Shown: positions 9,665 to 46,505, counted from the stretch's first letter. The stretch is 64,000 bases of DNA from Cyanophora paradoxa CCMP329 (GCA_004431415.1 QPMI01000053.1:30863-94862); one strand, 5' to 3'. The notes: generated by a model from the letters alone, not told the origin. Numbers and translations: made by a program.

Positions 9665-10021
9665 TTTTTTTGCAGCAATTTATTTTTATTTGTAGCATCA
9701 GGGCCCCTGTGGCCAACATTCCACGCCAACACTAGCTGTGTCAGAGTCTCAGGGTGGTGGCTGTCGTCTTGGGGTGGCGGCCGAAATTCCTACGGGCTAG
9801 CTAGCCGCTGAGCCTAGTAGCCCTTGAGACCTGCCGGGTGGGCAGCCTGCACCAGAGGCACCTGCCGACCCCGGGGTCCCTATCCGACTGCTCAGCGACC
9901 ACGCACTCCTGACTGCGATTCGGAGGACAGCCCTCAGGGCCTACACCCGCTGCCCCTTCAACAAGAAGGCTAGCGCTGCCTCCCTCTTGGGAGGAGGCCC
10001 TCGCAAACGGGCTTGTGACAC

Positions 10022-10335
10022 TGCTCTTTCTAAGCGACGGGCGCGGCCGGACCTCCTACCTCAGCGCTTTAACTGTACCCGTGCTGTTTGGGTGAGAGCG
10101 TAACCCGCAGGGACTGGTGCCCTGATGGAAAAAAGGGGATCGGATCCGGAGCCTAGCTAGCTACGAGCTGAGCAGGCGCTTCGCGTCCACGCCCGTGCCG
10201 TAGCGGATCAGGATGCGTCGAAAGTTGGACGTCGTAATCGCAACGTTAACTTAGTAACTCTGATTCCGATCGTAATCGCAACTCTGATTCCGATCGTAAT
10301 CGCAACTCTGATTCCGATCGTAATCGCAACTCTGA
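10022..10335 (-). mobile_element. Fanzor 3'-end/omegaRNA copy 2 plus 24-mer satellite
   Basis: TGCTCTTTC terminus. Flanking direct repeat TGACACTGCTCT at 10016-10027 and 10333-10344. A related empty site lies at ~56385-56510 (minus). Confidence 0.9.
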
Positions 10336-10675
10336 CACTGCTCTATTGTTTCCCCCTAAGGGCCCGGTGCATTCCGGGTTCCAGCACGTAGCGTGGCTTT
10401 TGCTGCCGTGGGAAGAGCACCCCTGCCCTTTCTAATTTGAAGTCAGCTTCGAGCATTGGGCGCGAACTGAATTGCAAAAGCGCATCCATAGTTTTTTGGC
10501 AACTCATTCTCGAGCGGGCCGCGCTCAATGATGCATTTCAGACGCGATCGACAACATCTCGACTAGCTGTTCTGACGAGCTGTGCTTCCCGATCCTGCGA
10601 AACATTGTACACAGTGAATCGATTTACGACCCAGTAAATCGATTTACGACGAATCAAATATGTGCGTACGCTTCT

Positions 10676-10894
10676 TCATTCTCGAGCGGGCCGCGGCGCG
10701 GCGGGCGGGCCGCGCTCGATGATATCGGCGAGCACTCGTGTGGACTGCCAGATATCTACGCCGCGCACGTTAATCCGTCGCCGCCGAGCGCGGTCTATGT
10801 CCGCACCTTGATGCAGCTTGAAGTAAGCCGCAGCTCCGCCGACAGCGCACCCCGCGAAGAACGACGCGAGCTGCGACCTGATTCCTTGGAGCAT
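10676..10894 (-). CDS. Small single-TM protein (~55 aa, 2 exons), possibly mitochondrial
   Basis: Spliced MLQGIRSQLASFFAGCAVGGAAAYFKLHQ/DIWQSTRVLADII… with a clean GT-AG intron. Confidence 0.65.
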   Translation of the reverse strand: MLQGIRSQLASFFAGCAVGGAAAYFKLHQGADIDRARRRRINVRGVDIWQSTRVLADIIERGPPAAPRPARE

Positions 10895-11695
10895 TTCGCT
10901 CTCTGACGCGACCTGATTCTGGCTTTCTGACGTCGGCGAGCAATCGCGTGGACTGCCAGATACCTACGCCGCGCACGTTGATCGACCCCGCGGACACGTG
11001 AGAGAGAGAGCAAGTAAAAGACACTCCCAGGACTCGAAACCGAGTCTGGGTGGTGATAAACATATTGCTCTCAAAAAAAGAAAATAACAACCCGTATGAA
11101 GACCCTACCCGAGACGTAGGATCTCATACAGGAAACAAACCTGACCTTCCCATACTGACCTGCTCCCTATCAGGACACGTACGCGCGAGGGCGACACGTC
11201 GGGGGGTACACCGCCGTCTCTGCTCTGCCTGTCTGGGCCAGCGCCTCGACGGCCACGCGTCTTTGACTCTAGCGATCGTAATTTGACTCTAGCGATCGTC
11301 ATTCTTCCGATCGTAGCAAACAGTCCAGACGATCGTAATTCTAGACCTTCAAGGGCTTCTCGGTCGTAATTCGGTGCGGTCGTAATCGTGCGCGTGTACG
11401 CGTGGGCTTGTCTGGGTCTATGTGCGCACCTTTATGCAGCTTGAAGTAAGCCGCTGCTCCGCCGACAGTGCACCCCGCGAGTAATCCAACGCTCTCTCAG
11501 TGACTCTCCGACTCAGCCGCTCAGACCCGCTTAGGGCCGCTCTCGGGCTGGGGGTACGCGGCGATTGACTGCATTCGTCAAGAATTAGTATATAGGAAGG
11601 TCAAGAATTAGAAATGCGTGTGCTGTGCACGTGGGTACGTGGTGTGGATGCCCTCCTCGGAATGCCAAGGCCGCCGGGCTGTGCTTATATGTATA

Positions 11696-11960
11696 GCATT
11701 TGGACGTCGACACGTACTAAAGACGTGGGCTGCAAGTGTGCACGTGGGATGTGCACTGCGGCCCCGTACGCGTGGCCGTGCACGTGGGCCCACGTGCACT
11801 AGTACTGGGCCAGCCCATCAGCGAGCTGGCCGGCCGGGCCCTGCGTGGAGCTGGCCTGAGTGTAATGCGCCTCCCCGCCGACACTCTGGCTAGCCAGATC
11901 TAGAGCTACAGCTGCAGGTGCCCGCACGTGCACGGCGGTTGTGCCACGGTGGCATCGCGT
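11696..11960 (+). mobile_element. Repeat family B copy
   Basis: GCATTTGGACG… start and diverged match to the consensus. Confidence 0.8.
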
Positions 11961-12031
11961 TTTTTTTTGCTTTGGTTTGAACCACTGCCTCCCTCAAAAT
12001 TCATGCATGGCGCATATTCAAAGAACCTATT

Positions 12032-43675: not shown

Positions 43676-43939
43676 CTTTTCAAATTCGAGCACCCGCAGC
43701 TGGTGAATTCGAGCACCCGCAGCTGTCGAATTCGAGCACCCACAGCGACCGCGGTCAGGCGTCGCCGTCGGTTTCGAGCCGCCGTTCCGCGTTCGGCTGG
43801 GCTTTTCTGACAGCCGTGACGTCGCCGCGCGCGGAGTTTTACTGGGGATAGCCCCCTGATCGTAATCGTAATTTTCCAGTTGACCAGGCCAGGGCTCCCC
43901 CCGCCTATAGCCCATCGTAATCGTAATGGGCGCGGCAGT

Positions 43940-44137
43940 CGCAATCGTAATCGTACTGATCGCACTTTCGTCCAACTTTCGTCCAACTTCGTCCAACTTT
44001 CGTCCAACTTTCGTCCAACTTTCGTACAACTTTCGTCCAACTTTCGTCCAACTTTAATTTCGTCCAACTTTCGTCCAACTTTCGTCCAACTTTCGTCCAA
44101 CTTCGTCCAACTTTCGTCCAACTTTCGTCCAACTTTC
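43940..44137. repeat. Fanzor-intron fragment joined to (AACTTTCGTCC)n satellite
   Basis: CGCAATCGTAATCGTACTGATCGCA is identical to the Fanzor intron and is followed by ~15 11-mer units. Confidence 0.88.
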
Positions 44138-44661
44138 GAATTCGACCAGCCTCCATTCTGCTGATGGGCACGTGCGCACGCCGGGGAGGATAACTGGTTC
44201 TTCCAGAGAGCCCACCGGAGAGCCCGCCACGTGCGCGTGCAGCCGCGTGCCGCGTGCCTGGGGCAGCCGCGTGCCGCGTGCCTGGGGCAGAACTGTCAAA
44301 AAACGCCTACCCCCTAATCGTTATCGCAATCAAAGACACCCGGCAGGATATATGCTATTTGTCTAGAGGTGGAGCAGTATTGCATCGCGTCCGGACAGTC
44401 AGAAGATGTGATGCTGGAACTGTGGCCATATCGCGATCGCGATCCGTTTCTTGCTGTCGTTTCCAACTTGACAAATCAGTTTTTATTTGAATCAAGGCTT
44501 GATCCGATGATCATAAAGCCCCCAGCAGTCAGCGGCTAGCCTAGTCTAGTTCTGGGCCGCAGATCTGGAGCTAGCGCTCCAGATCTAGATCTAGAGCAGG
44601 GATCGCGCCCCGCGGCGATCGGGCCCAAATCCCGTAGTCCGAATCATTGAATCCGGATTCG

Positions 44662-45101
44662 CATAGTCGAGTGGATAAGGTGTCGGCCTTACCGCTCAGA
44701 GGACCCCGGTTCGAATCCGGACCGGAACTACCGAACCCGCTTCAAATCCCGGAGAAACCCCGACCTTGGGGCCCCGCAAGGGGTACCGAGCTCCTGGTCC
44801 CAACACGGCCAAGCATAGGAGCCATCAAGCAAGCAACTAGGACCGTGCAACTGGGTACATCATGCCGAAGACTCACGACTGTGGACACACGCATCTTCAG
44901 CTGCGGCCCCATTGGAGGCTCCGGAGGATTATGTCTGAAGGGTACAATCAGCTCTGGGAGAACTGGCTCGGCAAGACCGGACACATAGTTAGTTGGACTA
45001 CGACGTACCCGCTCACAGTAGTAGAGTAGCCCTCGTGCCGGTGGATGTGACGGACGGTGGGGTAGTGTGCATGTAAGGAATGACACTACAAACTTCAAAA
45101 A
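44662..45101 (+). mobile_element. tRNA-derived SINE-like retroposon
   Basis: A box TAGTCGAGTGG, B box GGTTCGAATCC, 3' hairpin GTAGTGT…ACACTAC and a short A tail. Flanked by identical 101-bp direct repeats (44561-44661, 45102-45202). Confidence 0.82.
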
Positions 45102-46012
45102 AGATCTGGAGCTAGCGCTCCAGATCTAGATCTAGAGCAGGGATCGCGCCCCGCGGCGATCGGGCCCAAATCCCGTAGTCCGAATCATTGAATCCGGATT
45201 CGATGATCTGATGATCAAAACCTGACAGACTGATATTCGACTCGGCGAATCGAAATCAAATTAAAGCCTTTTTTATAAGCCGGGCCGCGGCCACGCTCCG
45301 CCCACTGGCCATAACTATATAAGTGCATGATGCATGGGCAATATTAATGGCCAGCCTGGGCAGGTGCCTCTCCCCCCCCCCCCCCCCCCCCCCCCCCCCC
45401 CCGCCAAAAAAAAGCAAATCCAAATCGAAATAAATTTTCCTGTCGCATGTAGTGCCCCCAATTGCAAGGGGCAGCGCAGCCTCGGGTCGCGGGGGAGGGG
45501 GTAAAAGGTATGCGTTCTAGAAAGCTTTAAGGTTTCGCTCTCGTCGTTCTGTTGTCGTTCTTGCATGCACGATCGGCCAATAGGATTTCGAGGCCCCAAA
45601 GAATCCATCCATTTCCCTATATACCACCGCAGCTGCAGAATTAGAAGCCTTGAACATGAAGTGTGCACGCCGTGACGTACGCGTGAAAAGTAGAACCTCG
45701 GGTCGTTACCCTCTGAGGCTTGCTCCGCTCGAGTCGACCCGAGGCTGATCAAAAGTATTAACCTCGAGCTCAGAGCGCTGGCTTAAATCAAAGTGCAGCC
45801 TCTCGAGCTCAGATCTAGAGCCTGAGCCTGTGCTCGCTGGTGGGCTGGCCACGGGCCGGCGGCGGCAGCGGCCCCAGTGTCTCGTAATATATATACGTAT
45901 GGCACACAGTCCGGCCGCCGCGCGCGGACCTGTCCGGCCGGCGGACCTCAGGGGGCCTGCAATTCGTGCCACGGCTCTGTAGCCCAAATCAGCTGCATGC
46001 GCAGCTGCAGAG

Positions 46013-46209
46013 TGCTCTTTCTACGCTACGGGCGCGCCGGACCTCCTACCTACAGCGCTTTAACTGTACCCGTGCTGTTTGGGTGAGAGCGTAACCCGCA
46101 GGGACTGGTGCCCTGATGGGGAAAAAGGGGATGGAGCAGCCGGGCTTTGGCTATGCTAGTGGGAGGAGACCTGCGGTGGCTAGTGGGAGGAGACCTGCGG
46201 CTGCCCCTG
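46013..46209 (-). mobile_element. Minimal omegaRNA-only copy 9 plus a short tandem duplication
   Basis: Element homology only at 46013-~46137. Direct repeat GCTGCAGAGTGC at 46004-46015 and 46210-46221. Confidence 0.9.
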
Positions 46210-46505
46210 GCTGCAGAGTGCAGCCATGTTGATTCTGGGGTACAGATCAAGAGCCGTCGCGTCTGCGAGACTGCCGCAGTGCGACACATTAACGTTAACA
46301 GCGCGACCCGCCAAAGGAGCCTAGACGCGCGTACATTGAGCGTAATCGAGATGTTCAGGCTTTGTTTGACAGGTACAAACTTGCACGTGCACGCGCGCCC
46401 GAACGGACGCGCGCGCCGTTCTGATAACCGGCGCGCATGTAGCGGCCTTCCGCGCTCGCCCTTTCAAGCTCGCCGGTCAGGCCTCGCCGCGCGCGAGGCC
46501 GCGCC

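Follow-up and report, generated by a model that had tools for sequence, protein, structure and literature searches.

Right-end copies of a Fanzor2-like transposon family inserted behind GCA targets in a subtelomeric region of Cyanophora paradoxa

How eukaryotic Fanzor elements move, and whether their nuclease is involved in that movement, has been an open question since 2013, and it is raised again by nine related repeats in a 64,000-nt stretch of the glaucophyte Cyanophora paradoxa CCMP329 (GCA_004431415.1, QPMI01000053.1:30863-94862; hereafter the window, with positions counted from its first base). In the initial annotation, these repeats had been taken for the ends of Fanzor omegaRNAs, spreading either by retroposition of the guide-RNA scaffold or through one-ended insertion by nick and repair. 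The analysis reported here identifies them as dead, 5'-truncated or 5'-chimeric right-end copies of a Fanzor2-like transposon family of Cyanophora paradoxa, and the underlying observation, a fixed right end combined with ragged left ends and GCA-anchored flanking repeats, is real and statistically solid. RNA and DNA sequencing evidence was used in the form of assembled contigs, the DNA coming from two runs (2019 and 2024), and the Fanzor comparison set comprised nine Cyanophora paradoxa EukProt models, examined at the protein level. Copies are named by the letter c and the coordinate of their terminus (c4908, c10022, c12032, c14692, c16132, c19889, c32338, c38440, and c46013), and tail positions are counted leftwards from the shared 3' end, with the longest copy, c14692, as the reference.

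The terminal 11-mer, TAGAAAGAGCA, has nine exact occurrences in the window, where about 0.73 matches would be expected allowing up to one mismatch. Seven lie on the minus strand (4908, 10022, 12032, 14692, 16132, 19889, and 46013) and two on the plus strand, ending at 32338 and 38440. After orientation and alignment, all nine copies are homologous through the final A (...AGAGCA) and unrelated from the next base onward, and the right junction is exact in every case, without nibbling or filler. Measured from this 3' end, homology reaches 130 nt in c46013, 194 nt in c10022 and c32338, 205 nt in c4908, 269 nt in c38440, 285 nt in c12032, 310 nt in c16132, 566 nt in c19889, and at least 586 nt in c14692, confirming that nine copies stop at an identical 3' terminus and have different 5' ends. 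They possess neither a fixed 5' end nor a terminal inverted repeat (TIR). The copies c12032 and c16132 are 99.65% identical over 286 nt and yet differ in their left junctions, indicating that the two arose by separate truncations of a longer master. One internal satellite-to-exon junction is common to c10022 and c32338, indicating that short forms can be copied on too. The sole family fragment in the window without the fixed 3' end is a diverged piece of the last intron at 43850-44140. A near match to the 11-mer at 10424 was discarded, as it has no upstream homology and falls within chance expectation.

Several lines of evidence place these repeats at the 3' end of a Fanzor gene, as had been proposed. 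Pfam PF07282 matches the minus strand of c14692 (15027-15257; 9.1e-9) and c19889 (20219-20455; 8e-8), in both cases above the curated cut-off, and a C-terminal TNB zinc ribbon with a TS-x-x-C4 finger and an RD motif is visible in the translation. The encoded peptide is 85-93% identical to the nine EukProt Fanzor models; a further entry, P0009, was left unused because it derives from an unrelated assembly (GCA_900162835.1). In the fullest model, P0157 (1087 aa), Pfam finds the TNB domain only, and a comparison of P0157 with solved structures returns the mimivirus L79 Fanzor2 as best match (9b0l; E = 6e-6), followed by Cas12m and TnpB, with no Fanzor1 chain at an E of 1 or better. The closest solved relative hence suggests a Fanzor2-like protein. 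The 3' part of the gene runs from the zinc-ribbon exon through a 161-nt intron (14888-15048) and a last exon (14833-14887) of 19 codons plus the last base of a split codon to the stop codon and ~140 nt of non-coding DNA. In RNA contigs, tail position ~195 is joined to 15048/15049 with GT..AG borders on the minus strand (12220/12232 to 15048/15049, and 10216 to 15048), and an alternative acceptor is located 11-12 nt upstream. The intron, already recognized in the initial annotation, is therefore spliced in vivo. A long terminal repeat interpretation, suggested by the TG...CA ends, was rejected on the ground that the last part of the Fanzor coding sequence lies within the repeat.

All nine copies preserve the ~140 nt downstream of the stop codon, with divergence of the flank at the very next base, and the position of this 3' untranslated region (3'UTR) makes it a candidate omegaRNA scaffold, the guide RNA being likewise located in the Fanzor 3'UTR of CrFNuc and ApmFNuc (PMC10530073). 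Its predicted RNA fold is no better than that of shuffled sequences (z = -0.19), none of the 47 predicted pairs shows covariation, and the tail matches no known RNA family in Rfam and no tRNA in ARAGORN, hence offering no head for a short interspersed nuclear element (SINE). RNA contigs cover the tails and, at other loci, cross the terminus. In eight of the nine copies, the sequence continues past the last exon, whether into intron, satellite, or zinc-ribbon exon, and only c46013 is pure 3'UTR, so that the guide-RNA scaffold cannot be upheld as the spreading unit.

Target-site duplications (TSDs) provide the second component of the signature. Exact direct repeats of 10-12 nt flank five of the nine copies (c10022, c12032, c16132, c38440, and c46013), as initially annotated, and an unbiased repeat scan recovers exactly those five pairs. 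The end of the element itself contributes 3, 3, 3, 4, or 6 nt to these repeats and always includes GCA, an overlap with the terminal 3 nt that has a chance of about 1/64 per repeat. A repeat was counted as qualifying when it comprised the terminal 3 nt of the element and 6 nt or more of flank, with its partner no more than 800 nt away; by this definition, 3.15% of 20,000 mock termini qualify, which yields a probability of 3.5e-6 for five or more among nine. For c4908, c14692, c19889, and c32338, no direct repeat of at least 8 nt was found within 2.5 kb, and inspection of the boundaries by eye likewise revealed nothing.

The targets themselves are informative. Once the insert is taken out, the c10022 locus can be aligned continuously across the junction with 56385-56510 in reverse complement, in agreement with the related empty site (~90%) put forward for this insertion. 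The empty site holds a single copy of the 12-mer, with one mismatch, and already contains AGAGCA, which implies that the terminal bases pre-existed in the target. The c10022 target (9975-10027 and 10345-10400) is a repeat of ~130 bp with at least two representatives in the window at ~90% identity, one of them at 56385-56510. The c38440 target is a degenerate satellite, and its reconstructed empty site is still a normal satellite unit. The suggested search for empty alleles gave none in the two DNA runs, which have the same junctions as the window and as each other, without polymorphism. At c16132, the 10-mer forms part of a near-identical copy (266-274 bp) of 13980-14253, and homology continues for 55 nt beyond the 10-mer, so that this boundary is not simple; on the 3' side, the next 8 nt also resemble the source of the captured piece (6 of 8).

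Table 1. Positions of the right-end copies, their flanking repeats, and related sequences in the window. MITE, miniature inverted-repeat transposable element.
Feature	Position	Strand	Details
c4908	4908-5538	minus	tail 1-81 (4908-4982) and 74-205 (5391-5523), 408-bp MITE-like insert between; no TSD found
c10022	10016-10344	minus	element 10022-10332; 194-nt tail, then 24-mer satellite
c10022 repeats	10016-10027, 10333-10344	minus	12 nt; six nt are the element's own end
c10022 empty site	56385-56510	minus	~90% related; one 12-mer (1 mismatch) with AGAGCA
c12032	12024-12761	minus	element 12032-12750; 285-nt tail, then ~435 nt of satellite
c12032 repeats	12024-12034, 12751-12761	minus	11 nt
c14692 (longest)	14692-15277	minus	3'UTR/omegaRNA candidate 14692-14832; last exon 14833-14887; no TSD found
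c14692 upstream parts		minus	intron 14888-15048; zinc-ribbon (TNB) exon 15049-15257; 20 nt of preceding intron
c16132	16125-16705	minus	310-nt tail 16132-16442; 3-nt overlap with 266-bp sense host-gene copy 16440-16705
c16132 repeats	16125-16134, 16641-16650	minus	10 nt; second inside captured piece
c19889	19889-20702	minus	566-nt tail 19889-20455 with intron and TNB exon; upstream, satellite-like sequence and 97-bp copy (20606-20702) of 3675-3773; no TSD found
c32338	32105-32338	plus	tail 32150-32338 (194 nt); host-gene pieces upstream at 31068-31146 and 31867-31926; no TSD found
c38440	37925-38447	plus	element 37936-38440; patchwork 5' part, then satellite, then 269-nt tail
c38440 repeats	37925-37935, 38437-38447	plus	11 nt
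c46013 (shortest)	46004-46221	minus	element 46013-46209; 125-130-nt tail, all 3'UTR
c46013 repeats	46004-46015, 46210-46221	minus	12 nt
Diverged last-intron fragment	43850-44140	plus	followed by 16-unit 11-mer array; without 3' terminus
Captured piece, c16132	16440-16705		from 13980-14253; 37 nt intron
Captured piece, upstream of c32338	31068-31146		from 13287-13365; 40 nt intron
Captured piece, upstream of c32338	31867-31926		from 13701-13760; wholly intron
Captured piece, c38440	38018-38118		from 46994-47094, plus-strand DUF3429 gene; 99%; 9 nt intron and 92 nt exon
Captured piece, upstream of c19889	20606-20702		from 3675-3773; 97 bp
Source gene of three captured pieces	13287-14253	minus	spliced host gene

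To the left of the tail, c10022, c12032, c32338, and c38440 carry satellites of 24-mers and 11-mers, which in c12032 form a 147-nt higher-order repeat built of both units. These satellites belong to the Fanzor family, since the same 11-mer array accompanies the intron fragment at 43850-44140 and many further junctions between intron and satellite are seen in DNA contigs. They meet the tail at 194, 269, and 285, and ~15 nt ahead of the first 24-mer are common to c12032 and c32338. Both observations would suit an ordinary two-ended DNA transposon, in which the short copies are internal deletions between fixed ends and the TSD has a fixed length, and the satellite joints indicate that internal deletions do occur. 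Against such an element, however, each of the five 5' repeats is followed by different bases, the TSDs range in length from 10 to 12 nt, none of the nine copies has the terminus repeated nearby in inverted orientation, and c38440 and c46013 begin with unrelated sequence, which in c46013 amounts to 72 nt with a 25-nt internal duplication. A two-ended transposon is thus highly improbable and, within this window, largely refuted.

Five host-gene pieces lie at or upstream of the tails and are 95-99% identical to sources within the same window. Three of them derive from a single gene, with RNA-supported introns at 13035-13089, 13264-13326, 13451-13545, 13615-13763, and 13961-14016, whose spliced form is abundant in RNA contigs. 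Intron sequence is present in four of the five pieces, the introns being supported by RNA or, for the DUF3429 gene, anchored by Pfam. All five are in sense orientation relative to the tail, the fifth assignment resting on a COQ9-like open reading frame (ORF). Three of the pieces stand upstream of c32338 or c19889, and their membership in the insertion is unproven because those copies have no defined left boundary. Wherever both partners of a junction are known, they overlap by 3 nt, and the 5' junction of c10022 shows a 3-nt microhomology (TCA).

The conjunction of a fixed 3' end, 5' truncation, variable TSDs, and 3' microhomology is the textbook mark of target-primed reverse transcription (TPRT), and an RNA route can be envisaged in which a trans-acting reverse transcriptase (RT), from a long interspersed nuclear element (LINE) or another source, copies an unspliced Fanzor transcript or omegaRNA precursor at a nick in the target and switches to other nuclear pre-mRNAs. 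That the captured pieces are all in sense orientation is what RT template switching predicts, and the coverage of tails by RNA contigs, some crossing the terminus at other loci, is in keeping with it. Yet the intron that the cell splices is kept in all six copies that reach it (c4908 in part, c12032, c14692, c16132, c19889, and c38440), and the suggested check for intron-less copies yields none among them; four of the five host pieces retain intron sequence in spite of the abundance of the spliced source form; there is no A-tail, and no LINE-like partner for the tail within the window; and no donor flank or guide has been carried over, although a mature omegaRNA would include ~16-20 nt of it. 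We regard this route as unlikely, and retroposition of a processed RNA, the first of the two options initially considered, is contradicted by the same evidence. Homology breaks located 2-3 nt from 3' splice sites (tail 194, and 566 in c19889) had also suggested spliced-RNA intermediates, an idea that was rejected because the sequence upstream is intron-linked satellite rather than the preceding exon and the junction lies 2 nt inside the exon.

The patchwork 5' parts and 3-nt junction overlaps lend themselves to another explanation, in which linear or single-stranded element fragments, their right end defined by the element's transposase or another nuclease, are patched into staggered breaks by end joining, microhomology-mediated joining, or synthesis-dependent annealing. 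GCA would then be mere junction microhomology, and the TSD the fill-in of a staggered break. The subtelomeric location is congenial to break-repair capture, and c16132 fits it best, as the piece from 2.4 kb away matches the target in the 10-mer and in 6 of the 8 next nt, giving the insertion a homology-driven look. It accounts poorly, however, for a right junction that is exact in nine of nine copies, for the presence of at least 3 nt of the same terminal motif in all five TSDs, which is more uniform than usual end-joining microhomology, and for the 6 nt of terminus found in the related empty site. As a general account of the family, break-repair capture therefore appears doubtful.

The features common to these insertions outline a process. 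The right end is joined precisely behind a GCA already in the target, the leftward extent of the element is variable, and the copy often continues on other templates, either the family's own intron-linked satellites or nearby unspliced, sense host-gene sequence; the left junction then falls 6-9 bp further into the target, generating a 9-12-bp duplication that starts with GCA. On balance, we lean towards a right-end-anchored, replicative, and probably DNA-level insertion behind the target GCA, with an imprecise, template-switching left junction. Retention of the intron in six of six copies, the intron-bearing host pieces, and the lack of an A-tail and of donor flank argue against a mature RNA or mature omegaRNA as template, and the same four points favour DNA-level, right-end-first, replicative insertion, and with it the one-ended nick-and-repair route that the initial annotation had offered as its second option. 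Under this scheme, the template would be DNA, or at least not mature RNA, and synthesis may be primed at a target nick at GCA. The enzyme might be a rolling-circle (HUH, Helitron-like) nicking transposase acting in trans, with second-strand cleavage possibly contributed by Fanzor. One-ended rolling-circle transposition has been proposed for the CRe-1/2/3 elements of Chlamydomonas reinhardtii (Bao and Jurka, 2013; PMC3627910), and a combination of an HUH enzyme with Fanzor, cutting both strands and so producing non-canonical TSDs, has been a matter of speculation by Craig (PMC10288648).

A number of observations weigh against this scheme. Four of the nine copies have no detectable TSD, and the boundary of c16132 is complex. 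No RT, RepHel, or recombinase ORF was detected among the window ORFs scanned, the window holds no transposase, RepHel, or full-length master, and a search for contigs encoding the closest protein, P0002, found none; both the enzyme and a DNA template are hence inferences. In canonical one-ended Helitron events, it is the 5' end that is retained and the 3' end that varies, a polarity opposite to the one seen here unless the Fanzor gene runs antisense to the element. The target is GCA rather than the T-rich target of Helitron2, and a predicted subterminal bulged hairpin, ending 12 nt from the terminus, is no stabler than in shuffled sequences (DNA fold, z = -0.9). Lastly, the sense orientation of all five captured host pieces is predicted by RNA templating and not by simple DNA capture, so that a pre-mRNA or a transcription-coupled DNA route stays open.

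The recurrence of this type of insertion in three hosts, a green alga (with Fanzor1c), Mucor (with Fanzor1), and a glaucophyte (with a Fanzor2-like gene), also invites the view that it is a mobility mode of the Fanzor/omegaRNA module and not of the carrier transposon. GCA would in this case act as the target-adjacent motif (TAM), and the nuclease would make or complete a staggered break into which the element end is copied, from DNA or unspliced RNA. We give this view little credence at present, and if it were true, it would represent a nuclease-driven replicative transposition pathway not yet described. If the nuclease drives insertion, the family would constitute a natural copy-in system linked to an RNA-guided nuclease. 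If it does not, the copies are routine transposon debris and mainly an annotation concern, because tails become fused into host gene models such as P0159. This 643-aa EukProt Cyanophora model is chimeric, joining an AATF/Che1-TRAUB host protein to a C-terminal truncated Fanzor tail (PF07282 fragment).

The window represents a chromosome end of Cyanophora paradoxa, as a telomeric TTAGGG array of ~5.2 kb (58750-64000), with degenerate units at its inner edge, reaches the end of the window, and its genes are spliced, with short GT..AG introns. One copy, c12032, lies within the 3' end of a host gene on the minus strand, and RNA contigs of this gene extend into the copy. In DNA contigs from the two runs, satellite position 12543 is followed by 31 other bases and then by the tail terminus (12032), which implies that two copies lie head to tail, 31 bp apart, elsewhere in the genome. 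The insert within c4908 (4983-5390) has terminal inverted repeats TAGGG...CCCTA and an 8-bp TSD, TGGGTGAG. An intact cytochrome c1 ORF (18683-19603, plus strand; Pfam PF02167, 5e-78) is convergent with c19889, which lies ~290 bp downstream of it. Short duplicates of 100% identity also occur away from tails (44561-44661/45102-45202 and 11000-11037/51190-51227) and could be remnants either of the patchwork process seen at the tails or of other elements. The window also has 48 occurrences of the 8-mer TCGTAATC or its complement, which stem from (AATCGT)n-like hexamer runs, against ~1.2 expected; they are found in the tail intron, the family satellites, 40-mer arrays, and the flanks of several copies (e.g., 15482-15869, 37192-37400, 38441-38560, and 43850-43965), and could be a binding motif or a genome-wide microsatellite. 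A further dispersed repeat, with 76-91% identity and both orientations, is present at 1175-1621 (itself containing the inverted pair 1176-1325/1463-1605), 29103-29195, 30743-31146, 43497-43676, 47364-47609, and 11806-11905. Lastly, 32000-36000 is a block of 70% GC in which long ORFs (up to 607 aa), none with a Pfam match, overlap on both strands, and it includes a 112-nt tandem repeat at 34443-34702.

Among known systems, LINE and SINE TPRT has in common with the Cyanophora insertions a fixed 3' end, 5' truncation, variable TSDs that start with bases identical to the 3' end of the element, and sense-oriented 5' chimeras. It differs in that the Cyanophora copies keep introns, have neither an A-tail or simple-repeat tail nor a tRNA, 7SL, or 5S head, and have no partner LINE in sight. 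According to a 2026 review, no retrotransposon is known to encode Fanzor (PMC13565253). The IS607-type Fanzor2 elements, mobilized by the serine recombinase TnpA, probably resemble the family in protein clade, with mimivirus L79 as the closest solved relative, and in an omegaRNA that reaches the right end, but they have two defined ends and no multi-bp TSD, as opposed to the 10-12-nt TSDs and absence of a fixed 5' end seen here. No serine recombinase ORF was present among the window ORFs scanned. TIR (DDE) transposons are set apart by terminal inverted repeats and a fixed-length TSD, neither of which the Cyanophora copies possess. One-ended transposition of IS91/ISCR elements and gene capture by Helitrons, both mediated by HUH enzymes, offer a parallel in their replicative spread with one fixed and one variable end, in the capture of foreign or adjacent DNA with its introns, and in a short target motif beside the fixed end. 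These systems make no TSD, however, and the fixed end of Helitrons is the 5' end. Helitron2, as defined in Chlamydomonas, likewise inserts without TSD after a T-rich tetranucleotide, in contrast to the GCA target and the TSDs of five of nine copies in Cyanophora. Helitron2 elements are further recognized by a 3' subterminal hairpin, asymmetric terminal inverted repeats, a T at the 5' end, and termini in common with a RepHel-encoding element.

The closest precedents are themselves Fanzor elements, and the mobility mode that the initial annotation had considered unknown for OMEGA systems was in fact described in 2013 (Bao and Jurka, 2013; PMC3627910). In MCi-2 of Mucor circinelloides, a near-identical Fanzor-bearing 3' region is combined with different 5' regions, without TIRs, and the 11-12-bp TSDs open with a constant motif, after which the bases vary (ATAATT plus 4-5 N; here GCA plus 6-9 N) (Bao and Jurka, 2013; PMC3627910). 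The shared part of MCi-2 spans 6 kb with intact genes in few copies, a Crypton link was suspected, and no captured host pieces have been described, all of which differ from the Cyanophora family. The CRe-1/2/3 elements, non-autonomous Helitron2 derivatives that include CrFNuc (Jiang et al., 2023; PMC10530073), share with it a Fanzor gene that contains introns and carries its guide RNA in the 3'UTR. They also share an overabundance of intact 3' ends with 5' truncation, variable TSDs of ~7-19 bp, the 5' TSD directly following a short fixed target motif, and, in some copies, a short additional stretch of non-Fanzor sequence following the 5' TSD (Bao and Jurka, 2013; PMC3627910). Their motif, on the other hand, is T-rich (TTTT) and not made of their own terminal bases, whereas here GCA is the terminus; their 5' and 3' ends are common to verified Helitrons, whereas the Cyanophora family is represented in the window by right-end copies; and their protein is Fanzor1c in a green alga host, as compared with a Fanzor2 as closest solved relative in a glaucophyte. 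The Cyanophora copies nevertheless show the defining traits of the CRe-1/2/3 type: intact 3' ends, variable 5' truncation or internal deletion, a variable TSD by a fixed motif, and occasional extra 5' sequence. The signature has hence been known in Fanzor elements since 2013, its mechanism being still unexplained, and the window adds to it a third, distant lineage with new detail: the target motif consists of the element's own last bases and is present before insertion, the copies that spread keep an intron that the cell splices, and the ragged left ends are assembled from unspliced pieces of host genes that all run in the sense direction.

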